The notes below the pieces were generated by a model. It ran no database searches. It was not told the DNA's origin and saw only the letters and a program-made list of their open reading frames with translations. Shown here piece after piece: positions 8,783 to 37,300 of a DNA stretch of 45,154 bases. The DNA lies in the NCBI GenBank assembly GCA_011109175.1, contig RDEW01000024.1, positions 856,656-901,809 on the forward strand. The letters are read 5' to 3'. This stretch comes from Dicyema japonicum (lineage: Eukaryota; Animalia; Dicyemida). Both the position numbers and the translations under genes were made by a program. Numbering within the stretch: position 1 is the first letter of the stretch; each line of letters begins with the position of its first letter.

Positions 8783-9260
8783 TCATCCTATTTGGAAAAT
8801 CTGCCTGACTAACTGCAAGAGAGAGACTGTAATCCAAAACAGTCGATCTGGTTTCACGGACTTTAATCCCAGTCGTAATGAGATCCTAATACGGACGCAT
8901 TCATTTTCCAGGAAAGTACCTAAAACTCTAGTAGGAACTGCGTTGAGCGAGGCACCGCTCTCGGAAGACGCCCCGACCAAAGACAGGCAGGGCTGTTTCG
9001 GCTAGATGACACTTGCAAATCTTCGAAAGAATTCCAGCATATAGGATCGTCCAGTCTTGCTGGAAGAACGGGAAATACATGGAAAGCTGATATGCACGGC
9101 TCCAGGCCTCAAGATCATGGCCGGCGTCCTTGTCGATAGAGAATTCAGGTAGAGAGTTTAGAATATTCTTGACAAGGGAGTTACAGGCAATTAGCGAAAA
9201 TAGATATGCAGGGATAATAAGGTCTAGTAAGTTTCGAATTCCAACTCCTCCGAGTCTCAT
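8783..9260 (-). mobile_element. CRE-clade non-LTR retrotransposon fragment (post-RT region)
   Basis: RLGGVGIRNLLDLIIPAYLFS followed, after a frameshift, by ESGASLNAVPTRVLGTFLENECVRIRISLRLGL; this matches the CRE-type LGGLGIR...SGAWLNALP...LRLG region. Confidence 0.75.
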
Positions 9261-9329
9261 TTTACAAAATTAATAAAATTAATATTAATTAATTTTTATT
9301 TAAAAATAAATTTTTTTAATTCATTATTA

Positions 9330-9911
9330 GGTCACTTTCTGATAATGCTCTATTACTAGGTTTATTAAATAAATTAATAATAGTCATATTTGCGTGTTTA
9401 GTAAGCAATAGAAATGTGTCGCAGAATATTGATACTTTTGAAAAATTGTCTATTAATGTCCCTGTGTGGGGTGGATTCGAGAATAACCGAGTTGTATCGT
9501 TATTTAGTGGGATAATTGAAGTTGAATATAAAATTAATAATACTGTAATCAGATTATATTTATAAAGATAAAATATGAAAATTTAATTGACGCAATTTTT
9601 TACTTTAGTTTACCTCTAAATTTTTCACCTCATGAACTGAAATGGAAGAAAAATGATATAGAATTCAAAATATTAATTTCCTGTATCAAAAAATATATGT
9701 TTTCTGGGAATTAGCATTGATTTCCATTCATATACATATGTTTACTCCAAGTATTAAGATTTGGACGACTGGTTATTACAACTGCTCTGAACTAGTCGTA
9801 AAAATTTCTGAATCTGCAACTATAAAAATAAGAGATATGAAAATGCAACTATCAAATCAGATAATAACAAAATATTTACTGGAAAAAGTACTTATGATAA
9901 CCAATATTTAG
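9330..9911 (+). pseudogene. Possible orphan gene remnant with mini-introns
   Basis: Removing GTTTATTAAATAAATTAATAATAG (24 nt) and GTAATCAGATTATATTTATAAAG (23 nt) gives LSDNALLLVIFACLVSNRNVSQNIDTFEKLSINVPVWGGFENNRVVSLFSGIIEVEYKINNTIKYENLIDAIF. Later stops; family not recognised. Confidence 0.3.
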
Positions 9912-11199
9912 CACTCGGATGTGATTTTGAAAGAAATCTCCAATTCAAATCAACATCCCATATGAGTACAAAAATAAATACAACTACTTCTCAACGTTAT
10001 ATAAAAAATACAATGCACTCTCATACAATAAGTAATATTAAGTTAAATTTAGAAATCAAATCTCCAGTACTAGTTTGTGTAATTGGCGGATAGTTGTGAT
10101 CTTTGCAGTCGTTTATTTAATAAATATAATAGAATACGTTTTTATCCAGTACAGAATGGCATACTCAATTACTAATATTATTTTCTTTTAGATTATAATA
10201 ATGACAATTATCTCATATAAGGCTTAATGATGTTGAAGTTGTTAGTTAGTCTGAGATTGATGTGGTGACGTATCTCTAACGAATGAAACTTCAAGAAAAG
10301 TAAAATCTATGTTCAATTTATTATCGTGTCCATTGACATAGTGATTACTTTTTCATTTATAATTATATATAATAATCATTGACATTGAACGACCGAAATA
10401 ACATGGGGATGTAGAGAAGTGGCGTAGACTGTTTTTTTATTTGAGAAATAGTAACATTGTATAAGGTGGAGTGATTGTAGAAGTAAGATATCACCGTTGT
10501 ATGAAAAGTGGTGGATATCTATAGTATTTTTTATTAAGGAGTAAATAAAATTTATAATCACAAATGCACTCGAAAAATATTTCAGAAATTGTGGAATAAA
10601 TTCGTAGTAAATTTTCCCTTCGATCATAAATTAAAATGGAATACCAGGCAACATCCTGTGAAATGGAAAACATATTTTCGATTCTTTAAAATTTTTAACA
10701 AAGATAAAAATTTCCAACCCGAAAATGTAAAATATTATTTATTTTGTGTTTGACAATTAAAAATAAAATCAACTTTTAATTTTTAGGTCAATTTTTTTAA
10801 TATATTTATCAATTCAAGATAACATTTTATACCTTCAGGTCAACAAGAGGCTAATCCTATCAACAATTTCGCTGACTCTAAAAACAAGAGACTCGCCGTT
10901 ACACCAATAATCTAACACTATCTTTTATAACGAAAATAGTTTTTATTAACTAATTTCTGTTAAACTCTATAAAAATCAAATCAATAAAAAATCAATAAAT
11001 TATTTTTACATTATTGACCTAAAATCTAATTTTGATTTTTTGACTTTATAACTACTGATATGTATAATATTTTTGATTAAGAAGTACATTAAGATGTCTG
11101 ATTGGATAATATCGTAGTCTGTGTGTTAACCGAGGAATAAATATGTATGCTATATTTTTAAAAATATTCAATTGTTTGAGTTAAAAAGCAAACAATTGG

Positions 11200-12915
11200 T
11201 TTATTTACTTTTTTTGTGCGAATTCATGTGTCTATAAAGGATCAAATCCATAGATTGCACATTCATAATATAAATGATTTTTAAAATTATTAAGATATTT
11301 CAAAAATGTGGTTAATAACCAAAATATCATTTAAAAAAAGTTTCAAATAGAAAATTGGTTTGGGTTAAATTAATTCAAGTGTACACAGAATACTTATCCA
11401 GTTGATGTACATGTTATGTAGATCAAATTCTGAGAAAAAGATACAGAAAGTCAATCTGTGTATAAATATGAAATTCCAAAGTTAAATAAACTTCGTTCAT
11501 ATATATTTTATGTAATAAAATTAGAATTTGATTCCAAGTCCCCAAGGAAATCCTTTTGATAAAGTAACGAGTTTTTTCCAAGTACATTTGAACGTCTTGT
11601 CGGATAACATTGTAAATTTTGGTGTTTGTCAGGAAAAAATGTGTACGCAATTTTGTGAACAAACATAATTTTGAAGTTAATTAAAATTTGATAATTTGTC
11701 ATTAGACAAAGATTCTTTTCGATGCCATCGAAGATAAAAAAAAACGTTTTTATTACGTGAAGTGAGATTAGAGAGAGGAGGAAATTGAATTGAAATATAA
11801 GCAAATATTTTGTGATGTGTATGGAGTTCAATCGAAATGACAATAAATAAGGTTAAAACCTTTGATGAATATTTATAGTCGAATTCAGACTGAAATCTTG
11901 AATGATGTTAGTCAGTGGTTTGTTATTTCTTAATATATTTTCCAGTAAATTGTAAAATTTGATTAATAGAGATTGGATTAAGAAATCTTGGAGAAGGTAA
12001 TATAATTTTTAATAAATAGGCGAGTTAGAAGATACCAATTCATTAATTAAAAGTATAACTAGTCATTCCTATAGTTTCTACTACTCTGTCGACGACAGCA
12101 GGTTTAATGATTAGTAATTCCTATAGCTTCTATTACTACGACGACGACAGCAGGTATAATGACTGTTTATTTACGTCAGATTCTACCATTCCATTAACTA
12201 AAGGTATAATGACTAGTCATTTCCCTAGCTTCTTTCACTTTATGATATCTATTTCCTGAAGGTATAATGAATAATCATTTCCGTAGTTTTTGCTAATCTA
12301 TTGATGAGAGAAGGTTTAATGACTAGTCATTCCTCTAGCTTCTACTACTCCGTCGACGGCTGAAGGTTTAATGACTAGTTATTCCTATAGATTCACCTAA
12401 TCCGTAGACGACTACAGGTTTAATGACTGTTCATTATCGTCAGATTCTACCACTCCATTGACTGAAGGTATAATGACTAATCATTTCCCTAGCATCTTTC
12501 ACTTCATGGAATCTATTTCCTGAAGGTATAATGACTAATCATTTCCCTAGTTTTTGCTACTCTATTGATGAGAGCATGTTTAATGACTAGTCATTCCTCT
12601 AGCTTCTACTACTCCGTCGACGGCTGAAGGTTTAATGACTAGTCATTCCTATAGCTTCTACTACTCCGTCGACGACAGCAGGTATTATGACTGTTCATTA
12701 ACTTTTGCTTCTACCACTCCATTGACTGGAGGTAAAATGACTGATCATCGCGCTAGCATCAACCAATCCATCAGCAAGTAATCTGACAGCAAGTATTTTG
12801 ACTAATACAACCTACGAAAATATTAATTAGTTTGATTCATTTGTTTTTTGTTGAGTAATAATATGTCTTCTTTATTTATATCATACAATTATTGTGTATT
12901 TTCTAGACATTTATT
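11200..12915 (+). pseudogene. Putative decayed cell-surface protein gene (FN3-like strand motif, S/T-rich stalk, hydrophobic segment)
   Basis: YKYEIPKLNKLRSYIFYV at 11461-11514; mini-introns 11945-11969 and 11997-12019 lead in phase 1 into the micro-exon array; hydrophobic FVFC*VIICLLYLYHTIIVYFL near 12840-12910. In-frame stops prevent a clean model. Confidence 0.4.
12053..12787 (+). repeat. Tandem array of 14 intron + micro-exon units (50-58 bp) with a 264-bp higher-order period
   Basis: Units start at 12053, 12102, 12154, 12204, 12262, 12314, 12366, 12418, 12468, 12526, 12578, 12630, 12682 and 12732. Each is GT(A/T)TAATGACT...AG (22-26 nt; the 12682 unit ends TG) plus 24/27/33 nt of exon-like sequence. 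Unit lengths 52,50,58,52,52 recur at +264. Confidence 0.93.
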
Positions 12916-12981
12916 CTTTTTTTCTTATTTTTTCTCTTTTAATGTAATCAAACTCTTATTTATTTTTTTAATCAAAAATCT

Positions 12982-13760
12982 TTAAACAACTAATTTAGTT
13001 AGTTTATCGTAAATTTGCCGGAATACTATCTGAGCACACGGAAAAGGTGCAAGACTGCTGAGATAGGCGTAAGTGATCACATTAGTACTAGGATTCCTGG
13101 GAGCTGGAAAATATCTCATAAATATATTAAATAGCTGAGGACTCAAGACTGATCCTTGTGGCAGTCCCCTCTTCATAACAATCTCTTCAGAAATAAATCC
13201 TCCACATCTCATAAATGATCCCTGTCAGGAGATTTCTTTACCAATCAAGTAAAACTTTGAGATTCCAGCTACGACAAGCAGATAATAAAGTGTGTCATGC
13301 TAGACACTATCGAAGGCCTTCGATATATCTAGACAGACGACACTCAGCTGATATTTGAAATTCCTGGCCTTCTCAATCTCAGAGTTCAAGATGAAAAAAC
13401 AATCTCCGCATGATTTCCAAGGATTGTTTCTTCCTGAGAAAATATGGGGATCCGACATGACTTGTAAGTCTTTTATAAATAAGCCTCTCCATGATTTTTG
13501 AAATTTGGCCTACTAGACTACTAGGTCTGTAACTTAAGAGATCTGTCCTCGATTTTCCTAGTTTTGGGATCATCCGAATAATGGAATTGATTGTATAAAA
13601 TAGAAGCACATTTTGTGTTGACTGGATCCTGGATTTTAAAGATGCTTTTGTAATGTCGAGTTTTAGATGACCTTTTGAAAGAATGTTCTTTTTATGTTGA
13701 AAAAATGAGCAAGGGGTCCAAGGTCACTCCAAAAATTCTTTGATGTGTCTGTATGGGAAT
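12982..13760 (-). mobile_element. Non-LTR reverse transcriptase remnant (Jockey/I-like)
   Basis: MIPKLGKSRTDLLSYRPSSLVGQISKIMERLIYKRL; LSVVCLDISKAFDSV; GLPQGSVLSPQLFNIFM. Disrupted. Confidence 0.85.
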
Positions 13761-14229
13761 AAGTTTTTACATAAATGTTGATATCTAGACAATCCTTTTG
13801 TCACCGGTCAGTGGTAAAATATTAAATGTGAATTTTCAGAATGAACGTATAGTCAGTTCGAATTCAGCCAAGTCTACGGGTGTGTAGGTGTGACCTACGT
13901 TGATACGTTTTTATTCAACTTCAAGGGTGTTATACTCCTTAATCTACTATATTTGTGTATAAGATGGTTTTTATCTTCAAAGAAGGAGATCTTATTGCTC
14001 CTAGAGAAAACAAGGATTGCTGCGATTAAGCTCTCTCTACACAAGAAGCTGAGTGATAGTCTACGCCAGGAGGAACATATGATGCTAGTATAGAAGAACC
14101 AAATAGCAGAACTGTGAAGTTTATAGATGGTTTCAAGAGGAATTCAAAAATCGAGGACACATACGTAAAAATGAGAGAACCTTTTGAAGAGAATGAACAA
14201 AGGAGGAGAATCCATATATAGGCTCCAAG

Positions 14230-14438
14230 CCTTGAGGTAGGACTCCAAATTACACAGATAATTTGTCGGAAATTGCAACAAGGTGGTGATCTTTATTACA
14301 GAACACCCGAAGAGTTGTGTTTCAAAAGTAATTGCCATTTTCGATGTCAGGCAGACTATATTTTTTATGTGCAAACTATATTTTAAACAGTATTAGTTTA
14401 ACAGACCATCGGTCCGCGGACACAAGTTGGGGACCACT
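14230..14438 (-). mobile_element. hAT (Charlie-like) remnant: terminus plus dimerisation-domain fragment
   Basis: Minus strand starts AGTGGTCCCCAACTTGTGTCCGCGGACC (Charlie-type end); TLLQFPTNYLC resembles hAT ILLPFxTTYLCE. Confidence 0.55.
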
Positions 14439-15261
14439 TGTTTAAAGTACTGAGGTGTTAGCAAGATATATGCAAACTGGTTTTTAATTTGGAGGAATCA
14501 AATTCGATTTATGTTACATCCATAGTCATTAAAAATTGATAATAGACAGTGTACTTTGTGGTTTCGAAATAGTCAGAGACTCGTCCAATATGTCCTGGAA
14601 ATCATCCCTTCTATTCTTGATTAGTAGTCATCAATTAAACTGATGAGATGTGAGTAATCTTAGACTCAGGTCAGTTCAACTATATAGTCAGAGTTATCTA
14701 TAAAGTCACGACTTACAAAAGTTTTTAAATAATTTCGTCATTCATTGCATCGCTGCTATCATCCGCTTTTCCAGAAATTTAATTCAAGAAAGTACATGGA
14801 AAACTAAACTCCCATGGTTTATAATGTAGTATTGACAGAAATAATTGTGCTATTAAAGGATTCTTGGACTGCTGTTGCAGTCGCTTATAATGGTAGTGTT
14901 AAAGTCATTAAGAACTTAGTAGAGGAAACTTTAAATCTTAGTTGAGCGAAGCTATGTGATACAACGTAATAGTATCATTCAAATGACGTCCTTTTGAACG
15001 ATTCCTCAGTTAAAAAATTATGTTCTTGACTCAATCGATATTTTGTAAAATTGTCAATGGCTCAAATTCACATTATTTAAAAAAATAAGTAATTAATAAT
15101 TTTATTAATTTTATTAAATGAATTAAAATTCAAAGTATTTTTGTTTTTGTTGGTGTGATACACTATGGCTTTAGTGGCAAAAATAATAAGTCTGTTTAAC
15201 TTCGTGTAAAAAGCAAAAAATGGATTCAGTATGTTTATAGTAATTAACCATAGATTGCATG

Positions 15262-18158: not shown

Positions 18159-20026
18159 GTAGCAAGTAATGAAGAATGTTTAAATCTGTCTGCTATAACT
18201 GTGGGCAGTTTTCTCCACAAGTTGACGACTCAAAATAAAATTAATCCGTTACTTTTTGGGATTAATGATTATAAATTTTTTTCTATTCATTCGTTTGTTT
18301 TATAAATTTTATTAATTAATTAATAAATTTAAATTAATTTTGATCTTGTTGAGTATTTTTTTCCCTGAAAGTTACCTCAAAGTTGAATAATACACCTAAA
18401 CGCCAGTGTCAGGCCGGCACGAAAAAGGATCATTTGCTCTTCTCCACTCCACTGTAGGGGTTTCCACAACTGCATGTAATGGACTTCTTACCTTTTATGC
18501 TGATACCTGATGGAGTCTGTTTCTGTAGAAGTGGAAACTGGATACACTTAAATAGTTGTTTACTTTAACTTCTTTCTCGGTGTATCCGGAGTTGGTTAAT
18601 AAATAAATAATCGACGAAACCACACTTCCAATTACTTGTTAGAAAACTATTAAGATTACAAGGAATTTAAAAAATCCTTTATTTCACACAATCTTTTAAC
18701 AGTTCCAAACTGAGTGCCCTCATAGTTTTATGTTTCAATAATCTATTTAAGGAAACCCATCAAATTCTACATATACTTCGTCTACTTTAATATGTGCGAC
18801 ACATGGATTTACTTCCACATATTTATTTTGTTAAATGCGTGAATTGCAGGCATTTTGTCCTTCTGCTGAATTTCTTCATCTAGAAAACGTCGACTTATTT
18901 TATTAAAGTGATGCTTGTAACTTTTTAGATTTTTTCTCACCGCTTTGTGTCAAATTAACGGCGTTATGAATAAATCCGATTTCGCTTACTGCTTATCTGA
19001 TTATTTAGTGCTTAAGAATGTAAAAAATACTGATATTTTGCACAAAATCGTGATAACTTAACTTTATTCCCAAAAATAGGATTACTATCAATACCCCTCT
19101 GGATTCATCAAATTCTGTAAATTTCACCTGTTTTGCACAAAATGATTTCTCTGCCCGACGGATTTTTGGAGAAGAGTGCGTATTTATGTTCTGCCAGCAC
19201 CTTTTATAACCACGTGGATAGACATACTAGTGTCCTAAAAATGCAGGAAGAATCATCACCTAGTTGTCATTAGTAGTCTGTTCCATCAACTCAACTTCCA
19301 TTTTTTTTTCACGAATTTTTAAACAGGTTGTTCCCTAAAGTAAGAAATTTAGATTTTTGTCGTGGAAGCTGAGACTTACTATCTGGTTTAATTGACCAAG
19401 GTGTGCTTGATTCCGGCGAAACAGGTGGATATTTTAGATAACTTTCTAGATGGCCATTTATCGGAAAATAGACGACCTCGTTCACTGTTAGCCTGCTTTT
19501 TGTTTTTAAACCTGCTTATTTGGGTTTTTTGACTTTTATGATTGTAGACAGAGTCTCATCCACGAACTGGAATAACAATTTTGAGATATTTGAAGGAAAT
19601 ATCTCTCCCGATGATCAGTACAATCTTCAACTCCAAGTAAACAACTTTGAACATGATGAAAGCTTTTTGTGAGATTTATTTATGTTATTTTCTAAGAAAT
19701 AAATCCATCAAGCTTCTTAGTATTTGTATGGACCCCAATTCTACTGCGAGTACGTAATTTAACTGATAACAGATGTTTATACCGCAATTGATTGTGATTG
19801 GCTTTTTCGTTGTGTTAACATATTTAGCTGTGTTTTGATAGGTGGAATAGAGTGGGATTTATTAGATCAATTTACCCTTCAACTTCGAAGCTTCGGAGCA
19901 TCGGTGCTTTTGTCCATAAACTTCACTTCAGAGATAATTCTTACTCTGAAATCAAGAGTGACTGTCTCGCTCCATGCAGGTTACGCGAATTCTAAGCGCT
20001 ACACTTTGACCTTGGATTTTTTTGGA

Positions 20027-20663
20027 TGTTGACATCTAAAGTCAATTAACCACAATTAATTCACTATTTATTCATAAATCGAATTATCCGCATAAGAAAA
20101 AAGCATATTAAAAGTATGATCAAAACTTCTAAGAATACAATGATATTGTTTCATATCTACAATGCAAGATCATCAACCAAAATTTTACACGAATGCAAAA
20201 ATTTAGGTTTATTAAGAAACCAATTTTTTTGGTTGTTGGAATGTTCTATAAACTCTATACAAATGATGAGGCTCATAAACAATGTTATGGCTCAAGACGA
20301 TATTCAAACTATGAAGATAGAATGCATGAAACAGCATTTGACCACTCATTATGGAATCAATAAACTGAAAGAATTATGCGACAATTATTATTTCACCATC
20401 CACAGATCCATCATACGTGATTTATGTTCCTGATCCACAACATGTTCACAAAGCCAACCGTTAAAAGCTTAAATTCCATTTGATTCACATTAAAGCAAAG
20501 TTTCCTTGTGAAAGATTTCAAATGGACTTAATGGATTTAAGTCGATGGTCCCAGGCCAATGATGGCTTTAAATATATATTTAATATTATTGACGTATATT
20601 ACAAATTTGTTTTGCAAAGCGATCGTCTCAAAAGAAGCAACAGTTATTTGTGTTGATGTCACA
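20027..20663 (+). mobile_element. GIN/Ginger-type (KRBA2/SCAND3-like) integrase remnant, left-arm copy
   Basis: HLTTHYGINKL..YYFTIHRSIIRDLCS..TCSQSQP (HHCC-like), then KAKFPCERFQMDLMDLSRWSQANDGFKYIFNIIDVYYKF (rve start). Ends TGTTGACATC ... GATGTCACA. Confidence 0.75.
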
Positions 20664-23600
20664 AATTAAATAATCTCGAGTTAAAAATTTTTACGCCTTT
20701 CTGTTTTGTAATTTTGTCATCATGTTGTGTTTACTTTTTTTCATAAAAATTCAAAAATAAGGCAAGTGAGGTTAAACTCCTATGTTAATAGAGCACAATA
20801 GATAGAATTAAGGTAGTGGTAGGTTTAGGAAATGGTTAGGATTAGGTAATGATTTGGAGTAGTAGATGGTTAGGGTTATGATGTAATTGGTTAAATTAGT
20901 GGTTAGGGTATTTTTTTTAATTTATTTAACCCAAGACCACGGTAAAATCAAACTAATTATCAGGTGATCCCTATGCATTCTAACAGAGACTCATCTTCGC
21001 TCGGAAGTGTATGGTTTAATTAGGATCAAGATAGGGGATTTAATGAATAATTTCTATTATTATAATATTTATTTTTTATAAGTTTATTTAAAATAATAAC
21101 TTATAGTTTCATTTTAGAACAATTACTATGTGGCGTTTTATTCCTCAACACTTGCTTAAATACGATTTTTGAAATTGAGATTTCAATTTTTATGAAACGT
21201 CACCTGTCAAACTAAACTGTCATGTTACAAGGTTAAAGTGCAACGGCTAAAATTGTAGTAATCTGCATGGAGCGCGACAGTGACCAAAGAATTTCAAGTT
21301 TCTATTTTGACGTTGGATTGCTTACTGAGAAGTTGCTGGCAGAATTATTATCCGTTCGGATCGAATTTGAACAATCTATTGAGAATTTATCTTGTCTAGA
21401 AGAAGTTAAACACTTCAGACTCTTCTCGTGACGTTAAAAGATCTGCTATTTTGTTGGTTGTACTTCTTTATCAGGGAATGATGGATAATGAATAATTCTC
21501 ATTTTCGGGGGTTTATTATGAGACATGGGCTGCTCGTTACATTTTCTGGCCTTGAAAAATTTTTTTGATTATACGACATTTATTTTTTATATACGATTTC
21601 TATCGTGATTAATATTTAGATTATTTTTATTATTTTATTGCAGCAAATATTTAATTTTTTATAGCGGCAAACATAAATTTCTGTAGTGTGATATGGTGGA
21701 AGGTTGTTTTGTTTTAATGGGTTTTTAAAAGACTGCGTGGAATATGAATTTATAAAAGATGCTTTGGATATAACTTCCCCGAAAATTTTCTGAGGCACAG
21801 AAAATATAGGCTTCTTAAGAGATAGAGAATTTCTTAATTATCAATGAAAGGTATTGTAAATGTGCAATAAATGTATGGACTGTATCTTAAAGTTACTGAT
21901 CCCAGGCAAGTCAAATCTCTGGATTTGACTCCGAAATGGAGCTCGTGGCGTATTACAGAGATTTAACTCGGAGAATTAAATAAAATTGACTATGATTGTA
22001 GTCAAAGATAATCACTCTCGAGATTGAGAAATCAAAAAAGTCATTCAAAATTGTGAAGTTTGCAAATTTCCACCTACCTTAAAATTTTAAGATTTTTTAA
22101 TAGTAGATTGAAGATATAAATCACCACATGTTTGCTTCTTGTCCGAATATACGTTTCAGATAGATTTTAGAGATTTTAAAAAAATTTTCATGGTAAATCA
22201 AAATTTCAAATGGAGTTGACGGTAATTGACATATATAGTAGGTTGGCTTTTTAAAACATTTTTTATAGATTCGTATTTGCAGTTATTTCAAACATCAAAC
22301 ATATTCACTGATAGCCTAACAATCTTCGAGAAAGGGATAGTCGAAAGATTCAATTAAACGATAATGAGAAAGCTGTCAAAAATGCTGGATAACAGTGAAA
22401 TAAGTTGTTTGATAAATTAGAAAGTTAGTGTACAGTTATAACATATATGTCCATTAATTTATTTAAAAAAGTCTTAAATTCGAAAAGCAAAGACTGTGTA
22501 GAGCTAAACTTTTAGAAGATTTTCAATTATTGAGGAATGAAAATTCTTCTTTCAAATGTGTTTTATATGTTAATAAGGATGCATAATGACTTAATGTTTA
22601 ATTTTTAAATTCTGGAAGAAATTGTGTAATACTGAACGTATCTCTATTTCTGTTTCTGAACCATGAACCATCTGTCATTGTTTGACGCTATGTCGCTACA
22701 TAAATCTCTTTCTCTGTTACAGATAAAAAAGAAAATTAAGGCATGAATGAATAGCCTTCCATTTGTTGATTATTAATGAAATCACTTCTAATCGAATGAT
22801 TGCTCCTCTTGCCGCTGTTATTTTAAACATTACCTCAACCTTTACATGATTTATTGCTAATGTTGTTTAAGAATTTTTATGATGCTTAGTCCATTCCTGT
22901 CAGAATTTTTCATTTTTCCATTGTTATGTGGACGTAGATTTAGATTTTTTACATGACAGACACCTACAATTTAAATTCTCTTTATTTAATAAAAAGTGTA
23001 GTAATTAATGACTAACTGCTTGGATATATTTTTCGATAAAAACAAAATCATATACGATTAAAAATTGAAGTTATAAGCAAATCCTAATAAATCAGATCTA
23101 CATTTCTATTAATTCTATTGAATTGGAAAGATTTTTGTTTTTCTAGCATAAGGGTTTATTTTGCAACCATTCAAAACGATGCACATTTCTTCACATATTG
23201 TTGTGCTTAGGAAGTAACGTAACCGCTATAAAAATGGTGGAATAATTTTGATGTGTTTTACCAATTCCTGAAATAAAAAAACAACATTACTTTAGAAATA
23301 AATCAATATATATATATATATTTTTAAAAATTTATTTAAATAAAGAACATATTATTATGGAACGTGCCGTCGAGACTTTATGGTCCAGTCACTCGATCGA
23401 TACTTGCTTGTGTGGGAGGTCGAGGTAAGAGCATCGGGCCAAAATGAGATCCCTGCTAGAGCGTGCTAGGATCACATGATTATATAGTTTGTGTAACCGT
23501 GGTCTTTGTGTTATTACTATAACTAATTGACTGGGGAGAAATTAAGGAATGCTCTTCATTTCTATATTTTTTTTGTTGTTTGTAAGTCCTTTATAGACGA

Positions 23601-23667
23601 TCCGGTTCCGTAATTAAATGTTCACTGGTATCACACGTCAAGACAAAAAATCGTGGATGCGTGGAAG

Positions 23668-24426
23668 ATTCGACCATAATGTATAGCAGCGAGATTCGAA
23701 CTACGGGCCAGGCTTCTTTCCCTGAATCCGTTACATTGCACCACCTAAACATTTTATTAGATTATTAAGAGAATCAGTTCGCATTTGGAATTAGTAGATT
23801 ATTAAGTCAATTTTCTATCTTTGATTTAATTAAATTCAAAATTTCTAACATAAAATTCAAAATTTACTTTCTTCATATTAAATATAATTTCATCAAAAAT
23901 AGCATCATCTATTGATACAAACAAATATGATTTCAAAGCGAACGCGATCTATTATACCTAAACATTTAAACTACAAATTTCGCAATAATTTGAATCCACA
24001 TGTATTGTCATCTAAAATTGATAAATGAATACATCGAATAAGCTATCTAGAGGCGTTAAAACACTATTTTAATATAAATGAATTACTATCAGCCTCTCCA
24101 AAATTAATCAAGTTATTAAAAATAAAAATACCATAGAAAAATCCGAAAAATTAATAATTTACAGAATAATTCTGACATTTTCGAAACTTTCCTCGTATTG
24201 AGTAAGATTACATAATTATGTTCAATAATTTAACTCGAAAAATTAATAATTTATCGAACCAGCATAACATATATTGGAGTAGAATAACATTTCGAAATCT
24301 AAATAATCTAAAATAAATCAATAAAACCTCTATCGTTTTTGAATGTCGTTGACTTCAACTGTTTTTTCCATTTTTTAGATTTTTGATGATGCAGTAGGTT
24401 ATAAATTTAATAATATAAAATCAAAG
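23668..24426. other. 759-bp segment present only in the left arm
   Basis: The right arm joins ...GAACTAGTTAG-CTT-CCACGCATCC at 34973-34975; in the left arm the segment is bounded by AAG (23665-23667) and AAG (24424-24426). Confidence 0.9.
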
Positions 24427-25093
24427 CTAACTAGTTCAGCTAATAAACAGACTTTGACAAATAAGTTTTAATCCTGTCACATAATCAATGTTAAGTTTCG
24501 ACTTTGAATTATTTTGGGTCAAAAAACTGAATAGCTATGTTGAAAAAATATAAACTACATGTCTCCAATATAAAGAAATTTTTCCATCTGTCGAGAATTC
24601 TGAATCAAAAAAAATACTCTACTTGTTAAAAAAATTTTCCAATTTTCTTCAGTGTATATAAAATCAGGATGAACAGCTTGGATTTCAAAAATAAAAAAGA
24701 ATATTTTATCAGTCCGTGCAAGAGATTCTTTTTTGGGTAGCGCACAAGCAGCATCAATAGGGAATGTCTTAAACAATTTTGGATAACTGTGGATGAGTTT
24801 CTTCAGTATCTCTCGGTCTCTTCTTTATCGTATTGACCCAAACATGAAAACCTAACACTTTATTCTCTTACCAGGCCGAGAAAATCGCTTTTTTTATACC
24901 TCCCAAGAAGTCGATCAAACATATGGTAGACTTTGTGGAAAAGCCCAGACACTTTTCTTTGGATTTTAAACTTCGAATAAGAATTTCGAAAGTAATTACC
25001 TCTTAATTTGATTAATCTTTTTATTTTAAACCTAAAGTCTCCAATAAGTTTTAATTATGAGAACAAAAAATATTAAAGAAAATATCGTTAATA

Positions 25094-27491
25094 TTAGTGA
25101 TTCGAAACATAATTCTAAAATAATAAGAAAAATACATTATAAGATTCTTTAACGTCAATGGCACATTCTTGTAGATTCTTGATATTTGATAGCGAAGCCA
25201 AAGTTTCAATTTTGCTGAAGACATTTTTAGACATCATCATTGGGATGAATATTTGTGCTACTAAATCAACAAATAGTACGTTCATAGTAAACCATTCGAG
25301 AAAATTCCCAAATGGCCCAAAACCATAGTCTTTGGTCTAATTCCTCATTTAAAAGGTTTACAAGTGAATCAATAGATCTTTTGTTAAATGATATCTTACC
25401 GATAATATCCGATATAAAGTAATGTCCCATATTATCATTTGAACATGAAGCAATTGTATCAATAATATATTCAGACACGGTTTTATTTTCTGTATCAAAA
25501 TAATCAAAAATCTTCATATCTTCAGTAGAGTCACTCATTATGTTTGATAAAGCATTGCAGATGGCAATTATTGATATGTGTCCAAGTATCGCCAAAGACG
25601 TAGTCCCTATTAAAATTACACAAAACACACAATAAATAGGTAATCAATCCACTATTCCGAACCAGAGGTCGAATTTTCTCGAATTTAGTTAGATTTTCGA
25701 TATTAAAAAAAACTGGAAGTAGAAAGTAATCATGCAAAATAATATAATTTTTAGGAAACTGTTTAAAGAAGTCTAGAATAAGATCAATCCCTCCCAATTC
25801 AACAAACAAAGTGGCATTGTCGTTGTTTGCATCTGACAGATAATGTAAACCAAAATCACCTAAAAGATACCACAAAATTCTCCAAGCCACATTACAGTAA
25901 GGAAAAGCTATTAGTTCTTTGTATTTTTTAATATGATTCACGATTGACTAAATCGAAATAAACGATACCTCGATTGATCCGTAAAATCCCAAATAAGACA
26001 AAACCTCAATACTTTGACTCTTCATTGGAAGATACAATACATCATCACTCTCGATAATTCTTCAATGTGCGTGTGAACATCCCTGACGAATGTTTGAGTG
26101 AAAAATGAAAAAGACAAAATCTAAAATGAGCAAGCAAAATACAAAATTTGATAACTCCCAAGGTTTTATGCAACTCATAATTTCGCATAATATATTCTGA
26201 ACTGAAAAAAATATAAAAATGTGACTACCGTATGATGACAACAATGTGCTTCTAAAGTAACAAGGATAGCTTCATAAATAAGGCTAAGTTAACATGGACT
26301 CAAACCATCGATAAGATTCAGATATGTTCATTCCATCGATTTCGGTATTTAAACAATACCTATCAAGTCAACGTACGCGATTACATGATTTGTAGAATAA
26401 CCTTAGTATTTTGTGATGTTTTCAACAAACGGCAGATAAACTAAAATATAATTTCAAATACCCTCAAAAATCGTTTATAAAGAGAAGGCCGAATTTCAGA
26501 GTCGCAGTCGTTAATATAATGTAAAGTAGAACAAAGCATCGCATCCTTATGTTCAAAGTGAAAAATTGAATTAACCAAATTATATATGAGTAAATTTGAT
26601 TCAATCTACAATTATTATTAATAATATTACATTGTCATTATTTTTAAAAAATTGCGATATTTTTTGGAAGCAAAATGTGTCAATCTTGTGTTTCAACAGT
26701 TCTCTAATTGTTACCTAGCAAAATACGGTTTTAGTAATCCATAATCAATCAAGAATCCTGACAAATCAAAGAATTCTAAATTAGTGGCTAAATTTAATAA
26801 CGTTCTAAAATCACAGCTTAATTCATGCACATCTTTACTGTTTGTATACGAAAAATATCTTAATCTAACAAAATAAAAACCTTAGAGATCTGGGACTGGT
26901 AAGACTTTTGTTAAATTCTTCAAAATTGGATACCAGAACATTGTCAAAATTAATTCTTTCGAGTTCTATGATCAGTTTGATTGTGCAACTATAAATTTTA
27001 TTTGGACTACTTCTTTCAAGAAAGGAATCTGATAAAAGTTCTAGTGACCTAATTTCACTGAATCCGCTTTTAAATAGCAAATGAAGTAAAACTGGGTCAT
27101 CATATTCCAAAAGAGTGAAAAAATTGACATTATTTGGAAAATACTTCAGATAAGGCATATTCTCGGAAGATGAAATATAAGCCAACTTGATATTCGTTAA
27201 ATTTGGTAGGTTTTGGCACAAATTTGCTAGATCTTTAATATCAATTTGATTATTTGACAAATCAAGGCGGAAAATGTTGTAACATACTACTGTGAGTTTG
27301 CTTAATATTGAGAAATCATGCAAAACTGATAATATCTTTTGTGAATTTTGTGCTTTCAAATATTCTATTTCATAATGTATTCTTTTGTCAAACATCATCT
27401 TCGACTTTGAGCTTAATCCGCCATATTTCTTCATGTTAATGATTTTTCGATATTCATTAATGCAAAGTGCATACAATGAAGGAATTTGCAT
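25094..27491 (-). CDS. ZER1: ZER1/ZYG-11-family Cul2-Elongin BC substrate receptor (BC-box, LRR, ARM); 15 exons, predicted 689 aa
   Basis: N-terminal PSLYALC (BC-box-like) and LRRs (LDLSNNQ, LEFFDLSG). ARM matches: VAWRILWYLLDANNDNATLFVELGGIDLILDFFKQFP vs ZER1 VAWSxMWNVTDET..C..F...G......FP; RSIDSLVNLL..WFWAIWEF vs RSFEPILRLL..QHWAxWAL. Introns: 26859-26880, 26704-26726, 26606-26630, 26441-26461, 26360-26384, 26284-26305, 26197-26228, 26121-26142, 26018-26040, 25948-25968, 25833-25859, 25607-25628, 25258-25279, 25115-25135. Spliced length 2070 nt, no internal stop. Family-level call, not proven orthology. Confidence 0.85.
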
Positions 27492-28762
27492 TATGTTTAA
27501 AAATTATAGATTTTAAATTTAAAACCCAAATTAAAAAATTAATATAAAAATCCAGAATTAAAAAAATACTCTTATCTTTTTTACTATAAATTTTTCTTTA
27601 CACTTCGAGTCATCAATATTTTTTATTGTGATACATTGAAACACCAAATGGATGTTTTCCATCCTTTATGGTAGTTCTTGATCGATATTTATTATTTGTG
27701 ATGCTTCTGTCTCCGTGACAATGGGAACTTGATGCACTTAATTAGTTTCAAATTTGAGTAAAAATAGCAAAAATTAATCAAAATTGTATCCCGACAACAT
27801 AATTGACGTTTAGCTCTCTTTCATGATCACAATTGTGATAAATGAAGAAGCATTCTTAGTATCAATTCATCTCATATCGAAGACGATCAAATTGGCTGAG
27901 AAAAGGACGATGTAGAACACTTTGGGAAATACTCCACACAAAAATTGTTTCATATGTTAGGTAATCGAATTTGTAAGACGAATCCTGGATTTACAACACA
28001 CAAAGATGTTAGGGTTTACAAAGGTGTCATTTCTAAGAGCCCAAGTTTGGTATTCTCAATATAATTGATCAGATAATTTCTGTAGCACAAAAAACATGAC
28101 ATCCAGCTCTTCTTTAAACGTTAACTTTTATAGATGGTCTCGTCATAGCGCGTTTGCTTTTAATCTATTTAGTATCTTCTCTTCCTGTATGTGACTACTC
28201 TTTCCATAATCCTTGTAGACTTTAAGAGAAGATTCAATCACCTTTAAATATGGATTATCTCTCTGGTTTCAGACCTAAAAATTATGAACCAGAAGATAAA
28301 AATCTTGAGTAGTTTGAAATGCTGTTAGATTTGAAAGAAAACGTAAAAACTAAGAACAAGAGTTTTAAAGGTGTCCAGAGTAATCTAACACTTATTAAAG
28401 CTCAATGTTGTATGTATATGGCACCATAACTCGCGGATAAATGTACGGATTTTAATTTAAAAAAAAGTTATTAACAAATAAAAACAATGTCGAAAAAGTG
28501 AGTTAACCAGATATATTTGATCAATATCAACCTGTCATTTCAAAAACTCCACTTTAATCATTTCTGGGTACTAATACAAAATCTCAAAGATCCGAGAGAT
28601 AGGTGATAATGAGAAACAGTCCATGTGGCATAAACAATCAAATCTTAATATTTTTAAACTGCTAAACACTTTTCTTACAAATGGAATATTAAAATACTTA
28701 ATAGTCACCTAAGCACTTATAATCAAACTAGACACCTGTGTTATCGTATCACATATATACGT

Positions 28763-28920: not shown

Positions 28921-31911
28921 TTTAACAAGTATATAAATTCTGGCTGTGGAGGTCCAGGAGAGACTCAGCGTTGTTTGTCAAATAATCGAAGCTCGCGGCA
29001 GACCCTAGACCACATACACGCGGAACGTGCGCAGGTGTCTTTGCACCCACCTTTGAGACGTCTGTTTCTTTTGCGCGACTCTAGGAATCTAGGGAATCTG
29101 ATTTCTACACAATCAAGAGACCTTTGTGAGCACAGCTAGTTATATGAGCGAATCTCGCCGCCACGCAGAAAGGGCGGCCGTTATATGACCATTTTTTAAC
29201 TTTTATCAAAATAAATTGATTTATTTCTTTGAACTTATCTAATATTGAAAGTACTGAAGGAGAATGGACAGGGAGTTATTTTAACATTTTACGTTTAATA
29301 TTGAGACGATTATCAAATAGTTAAAATTAAATAAATATAATTTAAAAATAATATCAATTGGTGTGTTGATGGCGACAATCTATATAGGTTTTTGATAAGA
29401 CAATTCCCAGTCACAGAGAGCCTATCGTTTTACAAAAGTGAGTGAGAACACGAGTGATGAAAATATTGATAACTTTTGGAAAATAGAATGTTTCCCAAGT
29501 TTTGGGAAAGTAAACACAATTTTACAACATTTATAGAAAATCTATCATTAAATTTATGTTCGCACGTAGTCACCGGAACCTTAATGAAGCGTTTAGGGAT
29601 AAAATGTTGTCAGAGATGTCCTTAGTCTCTCTTTGACCACAAAGATTTTGTAAAATCTCAAAAAAATTGAACCCGATTATAATTTTTTATCTGAATACCA
29701 TAGTAGTACTATACATGCTGACATTGCTCTATCTTTTTGACAATTTAAGGTAAATTAAAATAAAATATAAAAATTGACTATTCAAAATAGAATAACCAAC
29801 AAACGGAAAGATATACATCCCCCGTTTTTAAAGTTATGGACTCTACATTTGGTTTGTATTATTGCTTCTAAGAACTGCGACGAATTGCAAATACGTGTCT
29901 TTTAAAGGTCGTGTAAAATATAAAATATGAACCACAAAGTAAGCCTTGTCTGCAAAAAAGAAGGGACCATTAAATATGCAATTTTTTTTCTAGCCACTTT
30001 TTCAAAAAAGAATTAGAAGATTTATATTTCTCACTAATATCGTTATTACTGTGTATAGATTGGTCAACTGGTGACACTACAAACTAGAATGTATGTTGGG
30101 GGAGGTGTAGAAAAAGGTTAAAAAGCAATAATCTTTGGAGATAGTGTTCTGGTATGAATTTACTAATCAATTAGAAAGTAGAAATGTGAAACATTATCTA
30201 ACCCTCTATTGCAGAGAGAACTTGAGTAAAATAGGTGACAAACCATCATTGCATTAATATTATTGGATGGGTGCTTGTGAAAGAAATGCGAGAATTATTG
30301 GAAACAATCTGATGACTTGAGAATAAATATACGGACATATAGAAAATGTTGATCACATTGTATTAGTTGTATCAATGAGGACAATAGACCTACGCAAGTC
30401 AAAATCTAATAATCGAGTGAGGAGAATAAATAAAACAGATCAGAGATAAAATATAAAAAGTTTTATATTGACATTGAGAGGTTAACCGAATGGATGATAT
30501 CCCACTAACGTTTATCGACTATATACGAAATGGTCTGTGTTGAATAAAATTCTAAAATTCTGAAATTACTGGCATAATTTTTGACATAACAACTATTTGA
30601 GAAAAGAAAAATTGAAAGTTTAAGAAGAGAAGAATTGGAACAGGGGCGAGGAGAAGGTATTAACTAATGCCTTGGATAGTCAAAACTTTAATATTAAAAG
30701 TTCCTTTACAGAGTTTTGTCATGATTTATTGAAGAAGACTGCATCATAGGTGTTAGAACAAAGAGAGAGGATTAATGGAAGAGACAAGATATCAATCATT
30801 AACGACAACATATTTTGTTATCACCGAAAGATTAATTAAAGACAATTTTTTCCAATGTTCCCGCCGATAACACGAACACTCTGATACAAAAGTCAATAAA
30901 AATGACTAAAGCTGTTCCAGGACATGTGAATAACTTCCAAGACACTGTCACATACGGCTAAGTGGAACGACGTACAAAGGTGGAGATATCCCCCTTTTAC
31001 CAGCTGTGGAATCTGAATTTGGTTTGGATTATTGGTTCGTTCGAACACATGAGATTTTCAAAAGATGTCCATATTACTAAGCGGATGCACCATTAGCGTA
31101 TGAAATTGATGAAAATGATAAAATACATGACAAATTCGATGACGTTTTTGCATGTTGAAAATAATCTTGTTCTCAAAATGGGTAAGGATTATGGAAAGAG
31201 TAGTCACATACAGGAAGAGAAGATGACTAAAGTAGATTTAAAAGCAAACGCGCTATGACGAGACCACCTATAAAAGTAAACGTTTATAGAAGAGCTGGAT
31301 GTCATGTTTTTTGTGCTACAGAAATTATCTGATCAAGTATATTGAGAATAATCCAAACTTGGGCTCTTAGAAATTATACCTTTGTATACACTAACATCTT
31401 TGTGTGCTGTAGATCCAGGATTCGTCTTACAAAATCGATTACCTAACATATGAAACAATTTTTGTGTGGACTATTTCAAAAAGTGTTCCATCTCGTCCTT
31501 TTCTCAGCCAATTTGATCGTCTTCGATATGATCTGACTTGATACTCAGTGGCTTCTTCATTTATCACAATTGTGATTATGAAAGAGAGCTAAACGTCACT
31601 TATGTTGTCGGGATACAATTTTGATTAATTTTTGCTATTTTTACTCAAATTTAAAACAAATTAAGTGCATCAAGTTCCATTGTCACAGAAACAGAAGCAT
31701 CACAAATAATAAATATCACCAAGAACCACCATATAGGATGGAAGACATCCATTTGGTGTTTCAATGCATCACAATAAAAAAAATATTGATGACTCGAAGT
31801 GCTTAAAGAAAAATTTAAAGTAAAATAGATAAGAATATTTTTTTAATTCTGGATTTTTATATTAATTTTTTAATTTGGTTTTAAATTTTAAATCTATAAT
31901 TTTTAAACATA

Positions 31912-34307
31912 ATGCAAATTCTTTTATTGTATGCACTTTGCATTAATGAATATCGAAAAATCATTAACATGAAGAAATATGGCGGATTAAGCTCAAAGTC
32001 GAAGATGATGTTTGACAAAAGAATACATTATGAAATAGAATATTTGAAAGCACAAAATTCACAAAAGATATTATCAGTTTTGCATGATTTCTCAATATTA
32101 AGCAAACTCACAGTAGTATATTACAACATTTTCCGCCTTGATTTGTCAAATAATCAAATTGATATTAAAGATCTAGCAAATTTGTGCCAAAACCTACCAA
32201 ATTTAACGAATATCAAATTAGCTTATATTTCATCTTCCGATAATATGCCTTATCTGAAGTATTTTCAAAATAACGTCAATTCTTTCACTCTTTTGGAATA
32301 TGATGACCCAGTTTTACTTCATTTGCTATTTAAAAGCGGATTCAGTGAAATTAGGTCACTAGAACTTTTATCAGATTCCTTTCTTGAGAGAAGTACTCCA
32401 AATAAAATTTATTGTTGCACAATCAAACTGATCAAAGAACTAGAAAGAATTAATTTTGACAATGTTCTGATATCTAATTTCGAAGAATTTTCCAAAAGTC
32501 TTACCAGTCCAAGATCTCTAAGGTTTTTATTTTGTTAGATTAAGATACTTTTCGTATACAAACAGTAAAGATGTGCATAAATTAAGCTGTGATTGTAGAC
32601 CGTTATTAAATTTAGCCACTAATTTAGAATTCTTTGATTTGTCAGGATTCTTGATTGATTATGGTTTACTAAACCCGTATTTTACTAGGTAACATTTAGA
32701 GAACTGTCGAAACACAAGATTGACAAATTTTGCTTCCAAAAATATCTCAATTTTTTAAAAATAATGACAATGTGATATTATTAATAATAATTGTAGATTG
32801 AATCAAATTTACTCATGTATAATTTGGTTAATTCAATTTTTCACTTTGACATAAGGATGAGATGCTTTGTTCTACTTTACATTATATTAACAACTGCGAC
32901 TCTGAAAATCGGCCTTCTCTTTATAAACGATTTTTGAGGGTATTTGAAATTATATTTTAGTTTATCTGCCGTTTGTTGAAAACATCACAAAATACAAATG
33001 TTATTCTACAAATCATGTAATCGCGTACGTTGACTTGGTAGGTATTGTTTAAAACCAAAATCAGTGGAATGAACATATCTGAATCTTATCGATGGTTTGA
33101 GTCCATGTTAACTTAGCCTTATTTATGAAGCTATCCTTGTTACTTTAAAAGCACTATTGTTGTGATCATACGGTAGTCACATTTTTATATTTTTTTCAGT
33201 TCAGAATATATTATGCGACAGTTATGAGTTGCATAAAACCTTGGGAGTTATCAAATTTTGTATTTTGCTTGCTCATTTTAGATTTTGTCTTTTTCATTTT
33301 TCACTCAAACATTCGTAAGGGATGTTCACACGCACATTGAGGAATTATCGAGAGTGATGATGTATTGTATCTTCCAATGAAGAGTCAAAGTATTGAGGTT
33401 ATGTCTTATTTGGGATTTTACGGATCAATCGAGGTATCGTTTATTTCGATTTAGTCAATCGTGAATCATATTAAAAAATACAAAGAACTAATAGCTTTTC
33501 CTTACTGTAATGTGGCTTGGAGAATTTTGTGGTATCTTTTAGGTGATTTTGGTTTACATTATCTGTCAGATGCAAACAACGACAATGCCACTTTGTTTGT
33601 TGAATTGGGAGGGATTGATCTTATTCTAGACTTCTTTAAACAGTTTCCTGAAAATGATATTATTTTGCATGATTACTTTCTACTTCCAGTTTTTTTTAAT
33701 ATCGAAAATCTAACTAAATTCGAGAAAATTCGACCTCTGGTTCGGAATAGTGGATTGATTACCTATTTATTGTGTGTTTTGTGTAATTTTAATAGGGACT
33801 ACGTCTTTGGCGATAATTGGCCACATATCTATATTGCCATCTGCAATGCTTTATCAAACATAATGAGTGACTCTACTGAAGATATGAAGATTTTGATTAT
33901 TTTGATACAGAAAATAAAACCGTGTCTGAATATATTATTGATACAATTGTTTCATGTTCAAATGATAATATGGACATTCACTTTATGACGGATATTATCG
34001 GTAAGATATCATTTATACAAAAGATCTATTGATTCACTTGTAAACCTTTTAAATGAGGAATTAGACCAAAGACTATGGTTTTGGGCCATTTGGGAATTTT
34101 CTCGAATGGTTTACTATGAACGTACTATTTGTTGATTTAGTAGCACAAATATTCATCCCAATGATGATGTCTAAAAATGTCTTCAGCAAAATTGAAACTT
34201 TGGCTTCGCTATCAAATATCAAGAATCTACAAGAATATGCCATTGACGTTAAAGAATCTTATAATGTATTTTTCTTATTATTTTAGAATTATGTTTCGAA
34301 TCACTAA
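31912..34307 (+). pseudogene. ZER1: Frameshifted second copy of the ZER1/ZYG-11-like gene
   Basis: Exon 1 is open (20 substitutions and no indels vs the left copy over 611 nt, counted by hand). 1-bp indels vs the left copy lie near 32740, 32849, 33052, 33155, 33831, 33892 and 34016; the BC-box PSL is changed to LLL. Some indels are in homopolymers and could be sequencing errors. Confidence 0.8.
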
Positions 34308-37300
34308 TATTAACGATATTTTTTTAATATTTTTTGTTCTCATAATTAAAACTTATTGGAGACTTTAGTTTAAAATAAAAGATTAATCAAATTAAGAGGT
34401 AATTACTTTCGAAATTCTTATTCGAAGTTTAAAATCCAAAGAAAAGTGTCTGGGCTTTTCCACAAAGTCTACCATATGTTTGATCGACTTCTTGGGAGGT
34501 ATAAAAAAGCGATTTTCTCGGCCTGGTAAGAGAATAAAGTGTTAGGTTTTCATGTTTGGGTCAATACGATAAAGAAGAGACCGAGAGATACTGAAGAAAC
34601 TACATCCACAGTTATCCAAAATTGTTTGGCACATTCCCTATTGATGCTGCTTGTGCGCTACCCAAAAAAGAATCTCTGGCACGTACTGATAAAATATTCT
34701 TTTTATTTTTGAAATCCAATGCTGTTCATCCTGATTTTATATACACTGAAGAAAATTGGAAAATTTTTTTAACAAGTAGAGTATTTTTTTTGATTCAGAA
34801 TTCTCGAAAGATGGAAAAATTTCTTTATATTGGAGACATGTAGTTTATATTTTTTTCAACATAGCTATTCAGTTTTTTGACCCAAAATAATTCAAAGTCG
34901 AAACTTAACATTGATTATGTGACAGGATTAAAACTTGTTTGTCATAGTCTGTTTATTAGCTGAACTAGTTAGCTTCCACGCATCCACGATTTTTTGCCTT
35001 TACGAGTGATACCAGTGAACATTTAATTACGGAACCGGATCGTCAATAAAGGATATACACACAACAAAAACAATAAAGAAATGAAGAGCATTCTTTATTT
35101 CTCCCAGTCGATTAGTTATAGTATAATAACACCAGAGACCACGGTTACACAAACTATATAATCATGTGATCCTAGCACGCTCTAGCAGGGATCTCATTTT
35201 GGCCCGATGCTCTTACCTCGACCTCCCACACAAGCAAGTATCGATCGAGTGACTGGACCATCAAAGTCTCGACGGCACGTTCCATAATAATTTGTTCTTT
35301 ATTTAAATAAAAATTTTAAAAATAATGTTTTTTATAAATTCCATACTTTATATCCTGATTTTATTCTAAAGTAATGTTGTTTTTTTATTTCAGGAATTGG
35401 TAAAAACTTTAAAATTATTCCACCATTTTTATAGCTGTTACGTTAACTTCCTAAGCACAACAATATGTGAAGAAATGTGCATCGTTTTGAATGGTTACAA
35501 ATAAACCCTTATGCTAGAAAAACAAAAATCTTTCGAATTCAATACAATTAATAAAAATGTAGATCTGATTTATGAGGATTTGCTTATAACTTCAATTTTT
35601 AATCGTACATGATTTTGTTTTTATCTAAAAATATATCCAAGCAGTTAGCCATTAATTGCTACACTTTTTATAAAATAAGAAAATTTGAATTGTAGGTGTC
35701 TGTCATGTGAAAAATCTAAATCTACGTCTACATAACGATGGGAAAATGAAAAATTCTGACAGGAATGGACTAAGCATCATAAAAATTCTTAAACAACATT
35801 AGCAATAAATCATGTGTAGGTTGAGGTAATGTTTGGAATAACAGCGGCAAAAAGAGCAATCATTCGATTAATAGTGATTTCATTAATAATCAAAAAAATG
35901 GAAATGTATTCATTCAGGCCTTGGTTTTCTTTTTTATCTGTGACAGAGAAAGATATTTATGTTGCGACATAGCGTCAAACAATGACAGATGGTTTATGGT
36001 TCAGAAACAGAAATACAGATACGTCTCAGTATTACACAATTGCTTCCAGAATTTAAAAATTAAACATTAAGTCATTATGCATCCTTATTAACATAAAAAA
36101 ACACATTTGAAAGAAGAATTTTCATTCCTCACTAATTGAAAATCTTAAATAAGTTTAACTCTACACAGCATTTGCCCTTCGACTTTAAGACTTTTTCAAG
36201 TAAATGAATGGACATGTAAGTTATAGCTGTACACTAATTTCTATTTTATTAAACAACTTATTTCATTGTTATACCAGCATTTTTGACAGCTTTCTCATTA
36301 TCGTTTAATTGAATCTATTGACTATTCCTTTCTCTAAGATTGTTGGCCTTCAGTGAATTTGTTTGATGTTTGAAATAACTGCAAATACGAATCTATAAAA
36401 AATGTTTTAAAAAGCCAACCTACTATATATGTCAATTACCGTCAACTCCATTTGAAATTTTGATTTACCATGAAAATTTTTTAAAATCTCTAAAATCTAT
36501 CTGAAACGTTTATTCGGACAAGAAGCAAACATGTGGTGATTTATATCTTCAATCTACTATTAAAAAATCTTAAACTTTTAAGGTAGGTGGAAATTTGCAA
36601 ACTTCACAATTTTGAATGACTTTTTTGATTTCTCAATCTCGACAGTGATTATCTTTGACTACATTCATAGTCAATTTTATTTAATTCTCCGAGTTAAATC
36701 TCTGTAATACGCCACGAGCTCCATTTCGGAGTCAAATCCAGAGATTTGACTTGCCTGGGATCAGTAACTTTAAGATACAGTCCATACATTTATTGCACAT
36801 TTACAATACTTTCATTGATAATTCTCTATCTCTTAAGAGGCCTATATTTTCGATGCCTCAGAAAATTTTCGGGGAATTGATATCCAAAGCATCTTTTAAA
36901 ATTTCATATTCCACGCAGTCTTTTAAAAACTCATTACAACAAAACAACCTTCCACCATAGATATCACACTACAGAAACTTATGTTTGCCGCTATAAAAAA
37001 ATTAAATATTTGCTGCAATAAAATAATAAAAAATAATCTAAATATTAATCACGATAGAAATCGTATATAAAAAATTAAATGTCGGATAATCAAAGGAATT
37101 TTTCAAGGCCAGAAAATGTAACGAGCAGCCCATGTCTCATAATAAACCCCAGAAAATTGAGAACAATTCATTATCCATCATTCCCTGATAAAGAAGTACA
37201 ACCAACAAAATAGCAGATCTTTTAACGTCACGAGAAGAGTCTGAAGTGTTTAACTTCTTCTAGACAAGATAAATTCTCAATAGATATTTCAAATTCGATC

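Follow-up and report, generated by a model that had tools for sequence, protein, structure and literature searches.

A tandem array of intron-like blocks and symmetric micro-exon-like segments in Dicyema japonicum, possibly derived from a multi-copy gene for a small secreted protein

We found a tandem array on the plus strand of a 45,154-nt stretch of Dicyema japonicum DNA (the whole analyzed stretch is called the window below) that contains 12 complete modules (12053..12681), each made of an intron-like block of 22, 25, or 26 nt and an exon-like part of 24, 27, or 33 nt. Judging from the sequence, we give an even chance to the reading that this is a gene-derived micro-exon array, belonging to a lineage-specific, multi-copy gene for a small secreted Ser/Thr-rich product, and that the copy found here is probably disabled. 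An earlier, sequence-only reading had described the unit as a mini-intron-like block plus a symmetric phase-1 micro-exon, and this description holds in all 12 complete modules: the exon-like part measures 27 nt in eight of them, 24 nt in two, and 33 nt in two, and is always a multiple of 3 and in phase 1. The span assigned to the array at that time (12053-12787) proved too short, since putative exons begin upstream at 11902 and the last one runs to a TAG at 12828-12830.

Two periods were reported by Tandem Repeats Finder, one of 52 nt over 12058-12726 (12.7 copies, 68% matches) and one of 264 nt over 12058-12760 (2.7 copies, 87% matches). The 264-nt higher-order block is composed of five diverged module types, A to E, of 52, 52, 50, 58, and 52 nt, respectively. 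Fourteen array blocks open with GT and a TAATGA-like core, and a search of the window for this pattern returned 15 matches, all within the array, against 0.21 expected. An AG end follows in 13 of the 14 blocks, after 22 nt in one, 25 nt in ten, and 26 nt in two; the previous claim that the blocks run from GT to AG over 22-26 nt thus stands for these 13 and fails for the block at 12682, which ends in TG. The same block is the only exception when all 16 blocks between 11945 and 12756 are considered, the other 15 having GT..AG ends, including the last intron-like block of the array (12732..12756, 25 nt). No second copy of the array was found elsewhere in the 45,154-nt window.

Exons 2-15 of the model described below are 24, 27, or 33 nt long and all of phase 1-1, so any subset of them could be skipped in frame. 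Without splicing, the array holds only two ORFs (48 and 50 aa), in line with the earlier remark that the unspliced array gives no listed ORF. When the array and its tail are spliced in silico, Ser and Thr make up 42% of the residues, and Ser, Thr, Pro, and Ala together 61%. The peptide list of the sequence-only reading was accordingly correct in being Ser/Thr-rich overall, but it left out 4 of the 13 array exons, and these contradict a uniformly open, mucin-like series: E07 contains a TGA, E10 contains a TAG, and E08 and E13 are hydrophobic. More generally, module types D and E encode hydrophobic peptides, not Ser/Thr-rich ones.

The array blocks agree with introns of this genome in both size and ends. 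As an intron control, we used the minus strand of 24900-27700, where an ORF of about 670 codons under the standard code, counted with all three stop codons as stops, emerges once 11 GT..AG blocks of 19-25 nt are taken out; nothing comparable was found on the plus strand of the same interval, and the three largest exons of this gene had no Pfam match. This gene, with its need for 11 introns of 19-25 nt, bears out the earlier statement that the array blocks are of the size of real introns in the window. A ciliate reading, with TAA and TAG as Gln in a Paramecium-like manner, had been suggested by the 25-nt introns and the small number of standard-code ORFs, but was dropped because the 670-codon gene is restored under the standard code. 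Animal introns under 30 bp have been reported only for Dicyema japonicum and myxobolid myxozoans; in such genomes, median intron lengths are 22-27 bp, and the splice signals of these tiny-intron animals are reduced to GTa and AG (PMC13644364). The control gene lies in a large inverted duplication (18297-28050 and 31353-40322), with many collinear arms that are 88-99% complementary, and therefore has a mirror copy. Two-copy tandem duplications were also seen at 41292-41621 (165 nt, 99% identical) and 44167-44739 (285 nt, 96% identical).

Upstream of the array, the sequence offers an ATG exon in phase with the array, whose N-terminus is signal-like. An in-frame TGA immediately precedes the ATG ATG with which this putative first exon (11902..11944, 43 nt) opens; the encoded residues are MMLVSGLLFLNIFS, and the exon terminates in phase 1. 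It would be followed by putative intron 1 (11945..11969, 25 nt), putative exon 2 (11970..11996, 27 nt, phase 1-1), putative intron 2 (11997..12019, 23 nt), and putative exon 3 (12020..12052, 33 nt, phase 1-1), which leads in phase into the first module at 12053; both introns have GT..AG ends, and neither is related in sequence to the array introns. At position 12038 in exon 3, most reads carry C rather than A. No charged residue occurs among the first 14 encoded from 11902 onward, and for hydrophobicity they rank in the top 2.6% of the 693 ATG-started, stop-free 14-mers in the window. At the other end, the putative last exon (12757..12830) is Ser/Thr/Asn-rich and ends at the TAG at 12828-12830. 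All of these features are on the plus strand.

One sense frame of the joined exons is nearly open (two stops), and the other two contain six and eight stops. The joined exons also have one open antisense frame, but it was rejected as a gene because no introns support it. A minus-strand gene was likewise discarded: its 23-nt GT..AG blocks leave spacers of 29 nt, which is not a multiple of 3. We do not count a free spliced-ORF search by dynamic programming as evidence, because it threads "ORFs" through almost any AT-rich DNA here. Beyond the array, a 26-nt GT..AG block whose start lies within the terminal TAG could link the last exon, with the frame kept, to an ORF at 12848-12985 (plus strand), which is T-rich, very hydrophobic, and 45 aa long, and is the only hydrophobic tail candidate. 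This tail ORF is not common to the family, as the read depth drops about 10-fold at 12851. The product had earlier been pictured as a surface-protein stalk; the family has no globular head, membrane span, or anchor in common, which leaves the "stalk" interpretation unsupported.

Nor does the copy as assembled bear out the idea of an intact coding array, for it has two in-frame stops and one lost acceptor. An in-frame TGA (12243-12245, plus strand) in exon E07 (12229-12261, module D1) ends the ORF as assembled after 65 residues, whereas the sister module D2 has TGG. Exon E10 (12391-12417, module B2) contains an in-frame TAG (12405-12407, plus strand) where the sister modules have TCG, and TCG also occurs at this site in loose read ends from other copies. 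Module C3 (12682..12731, plus strand) is defective, in that its block opens with GT and ends with TG instead of AG; judging from the sequence, 12682-12756 could act as a single 75-nt GT..AG intron with the frame kept. With E07 and E10 left out and 12682-12756 removed as one intron, no stop codon interrupts the frame between the ATG at 11902 and the TAG at 12828. The two in-frame stops and the lost acceptor indicate that this copy is most likely a decaying member of its family.

The bare alternation of intron-like and exon-like parts is weak evidence, because 41% of random 52-mers taken from the window and tiled can be read as a 19-31-nt GT..AG block plus a stop-free exon with a length that is a multiple of 3; with the block fixed at 25 nt, the rate is 20%. 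The five module types share 78% identity in their intron parts and 61% in their exon parts, and every type keeps GT, AG, a 3n length, and, in the best-kept repeat block, a stop-free frame. A neutral simulation of GT/AG/frame retention across the module types gave P values of about 0.01-0.15, a range set by how many lineages count as independent, which suggests that retaining splice ends and 3n lengths in five diverged types would not be expected by chance. Exon length changed from 27 to 24 nt and from 27 to 33 nt, both differences being multiples of 3, and the sole intron change was +1; the two 3n changes may contribute a further factor of about 1/9 to the simulated P.

A neutral satellite is expected to diverge evenly along its unit, but here the intron-like part is better kept. 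The mean majority fraction per column was 0.87 in introns and 0.76 in exons (Mann-Whitney P = 0.01), and differences between the first two repeat blocks were found at 9 of 101 intron positions versus 25 of 138 exon positions (Fisher P = 0.06). Modules D2 and E2 have identical introns, although their exons are only 49% alike. Within the exons, between-block differences were distributed over the three codon positions as 8, 11, and 6, and the changes comprised 20 nonsynonymous versus 4 synonymous ones; given these numbers and the lack of a third-position excess, purifying selection on the peptide is not visible.

The only public runs in which a search found this DNA were a few from one 2019 sample, and we mapped their reads to 9500-14500. 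Coverage of AT-rich non-genic DNA is continuous, skips of about 25 nt occur nowhere in this interval, and read contigs pass unspliced through the blocks (e.g., 12633-12851), all of which indicates that these runs should be read as DNA. Summed over 9500-12839, the depth exceeded that of 12840-13006 and 13675-14500 by a factor of about 5-20; run X2, for example, had 650-2039 over the family stretch versus about 103 in the flanks. This excess indicates that the array is part of a dispersed multi-copy family of roughly 5-20 copies, at least 3.3 kb in length. The multi-copy homology ends near 12851, about 20 nt past the putative stop codon. Depth was also high at 13007-13507, and the highest depth in 9500-14500 was found at 9500-9666 (about 85,000 in run X1), which suggests a different, more abundant repeat at the left edge.

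Variants of the family gain or lose entire modules. In all four runs, one joint leaves out 58 nt, a segment that equals 12468-12525 exactly given the stated ambiguity; it consists of one 25-nt block and one 33-nt exon and lies between two identical introns. Another variant steps back 104 nt, adding two modules. A 248-nt variant contig spanning 11895-12142 shows eight substitutions and no indel. The array had been suggested to be variable in length through splicing, and length variation does exist at the DNA level, as one lacking 58-nt module or 104 extra nt. The other proposal, that the array grew by duplication of an intron-exon module, is supported by the sequence.

The array locus lies, as one of the roughly 5-20 copies, among LINE fragments in a genome reported to be LINE-rich with 49% repeats (PMC6736024). 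ORFs at 12982-13609 (minus strand) contain reverse-transcriptase motifs (RVT_1, E = 1.3e-6, just below the curated cut-off), and those at 8783-9260 (minus strand) resemble the C-terminal portion of a LINE protein, although they have no Pfam match; LINE-type fragments thus flank the multi-copy region that carries the array. The 2.6 kb of 9260-11900 yielded no convincing coding signal on either strand. A transposon with defined ends was rejected, as no terminal inverted or direct repeats were found around 9260-12851. Apart from RVT_1 in the neighboring fragment, Pfam gave nothing for the tested ORFs; no relatives of a 111-aa flanking ORF were found in protein databases, and there was no protein record for the two unspliced array ORFs (48 and 50 aa). 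Metagenome contigs scanned for the repeat unit gave no matches. A known RNA family was also rejected, as the sole Rfam match, snoR77Y, scored 24 bits against a cut-off of 52, which is at chance level.

Most array introns contain in their core a palindrome, AATGACTAGTCATT, which is exact in five copies, or a near copy of it. Exons A2 (12339-12365) and A3 (12603-12629) hold a second palindrome, CCGTCGACGG, and exon B3 (12655-12681) holds CGTCGACG, the core of the A2/A3 exon palindrome. Array RNA was predicted to fold through intron-intron pairing at -96.5 kcal/mol (z = -4.3), whereas single array introns form weak hairpins (0 to -3.3 kcal/mol). No compensatory changes were found in the intron palindrome among variants.

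In the gene-derived reading, a 52-nt module (an intron of about 25 nt plus a 27-nt phase-1 exon encoding nine residues) would have been duplicated head to tail, the modules would have diverged into five types, and the resulting 264-nt block would have been duplicated again. Transcription would start near 11900, splicing would connect the signal-like first exon and the two short exons after it with the array exons in phase, and translation would end at 12828-12830, with a putatively secreted and glycosylated product. This reading is favored by the GT..AG ends and 3n exons of all 12 complete modules and by a block size matching the control-gene introns, as well as by diverged types that keep their ends, better conserved intron parts, and a nearly open Ser/Thr-rich frame. 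The hydrophobic ATG exon, joined in phase through two unrelated GT..AG blocks, argues in the same direction, as do the whole-module variants, the indel-free 248-nt contig, and the TCG of other copies. It is disfavored by the stops and the lost acceptor, the lack of a synonymous excess, the 41% chance rate, the open antisense frame, the palindromes, and the setting of the array in a multi-copy stretch of at least 3.3 kb that is otherwise devoid of coding signal and adjoins LINE fragments. Much of this unfavorable evidence would be accommodated if the array were a non-coding minisatellite within a dispersed repeat or transposable element, with its GT..AG ends and 3n lengths inherited from an ancestral unit that had them by chance and the hydrophobic upstream ORF arising as a by-product of AT-rich sequence. 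We regard this, the main rival reading, as possible but somewhat doubtful. The proportion of random 52-mers that pass the same reading is high; the depth of 5-20 times that of the flanks extends over at least 9500-12850 with no convincing upstream ORF, and reverse-transcriptase fragments of LINEs lie on the flanks. The two in-frame stops, the missing AG, the lack of a synonymous excess, and the lack of protein or gene records for the ORFs also fit a minisatellite. Palindromes are common in satellites, and the unit has two of them, in the intron core and in the A-type exons. However, a minisatellite accounts poorly for GT, AG, and 3n exon lengths being kept in five diverged module types, for divergence that is uneven along the unit, and for a signal-like ATG exon in phase with the array. 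In addition, amplification of the array does not exceed that of the flanking element, the array occurs nowhere else in the window, and no element delimited by terminal inverted or direct repeats was found.

Alternatively, and closer to the sequence-only reading, the present copy might be functional, with regulated or stochastic skipping that drops the stop exons, among others, and yields mucin-like proteins, secreted or on the surface, that vary in length; on the sequence, we consider this unlikely. The symmetric 3n exons would permit skipping of any subset, the frame is open from 11902 to 12828 without E07, E10, and 12682-12756, and schistosome micro-exon genes do vary their products by skipping (10.1101/2023.06.21.545858; PMC4350168). 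Self-complementary intron cores can also pair, as the predicted fold illustrates, and could loop out exons. Even so, the lesions resemble ordinary decay, with sense codons at both stop sites in sister modules or other copies, and the family has no anchor or head domain in common, the tail candidate at 12848-12985 lying beyond the end of the homology. The weak single-intron hairpins and the intron palindrome without compensatory changes also count against a functional copy. More specifically, pairing of intron cores in the pre-mRNA would be a built-in source of stochastic in-frame exon skipping, giving variable secreted mucin-like peptides from a single locus and bypassing the stop exons, which we consider highly improbable. 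Such pairing-driven skipping would by analogy be a miniature tandem-repeat counterpart of the variation in schistosome micro-exon genes.

The closest described system is that of the micro-exon genes (MEGs) of Schistosoma, which encode secreted parasite proteins that evolve fast at the host interface; their coding sequence lies mostly on symmetric exons of 3-81 bp, in multiples of 3, so that skipping keeps the frame (10.1101/2023.06.21.545858; PMC4350168), and their introns reach 5 kb (10.1101/2023.06.21.545858). The likeness is that most of the coding sequence would lie on symmetric 3n micro-exons of at most 81 nt. MEGs, however, have long introns and exons that are not in a tandem array, whereas the introns of the array measure 22-26 nt, and each combines with an exon into a 52-nt repeat unit. 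With its short introns and tandem arrangement, the array locus would be MEG-like in its working without being a MEG.

The spider flagelliform silk gene (Flag) reportedly has iterated intron-exon modules, as described by Hayashi and Lewis in 2000. It resembles the gene proposed here in encoding a repetitive protein and in having grown through tandem duplication of intron-plus-exon units, with introns more alike than exons. The difference is one of scale and product: Flag modules measure kilobases and encode a structural silk, while the Dicyema module is 52 nt and its product would be a short Ser/Thr-rich peptide. In classical mucins such as MUC1, the VNTR domain consists of Ser/Thr/Pro-rich repeats within one large exon. 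The array shares with MUC1-type mucins the Ser/Thr/Pro-rich tandem repeats and the copy number variation at the DNA level, but here every repeat would form a separate exon, and this copy has a broken frame.

What this copy adds is a higher-order module structure, introns conserved above exons, and gain or loss of whole modules in DNA, although it is itself broken. If the array is spliced, it would mean that in animals with introns of about 25 nt, a micro-exon and its intron can be copied jointly by tandem duplication. Such duplication would multiply introns and build genes for repetitive secreted proteins that resemble satellite DNA, and standard annotation would miss genes of this kind. In the published work on Dicyema japonicum, which describes a mixed-stage transcriptome, repeats were masked before transcripts were mapped (PMC6736024), and for this reason genes for the surface or secreted coat of this parasite could be systematically missing from the gene set.
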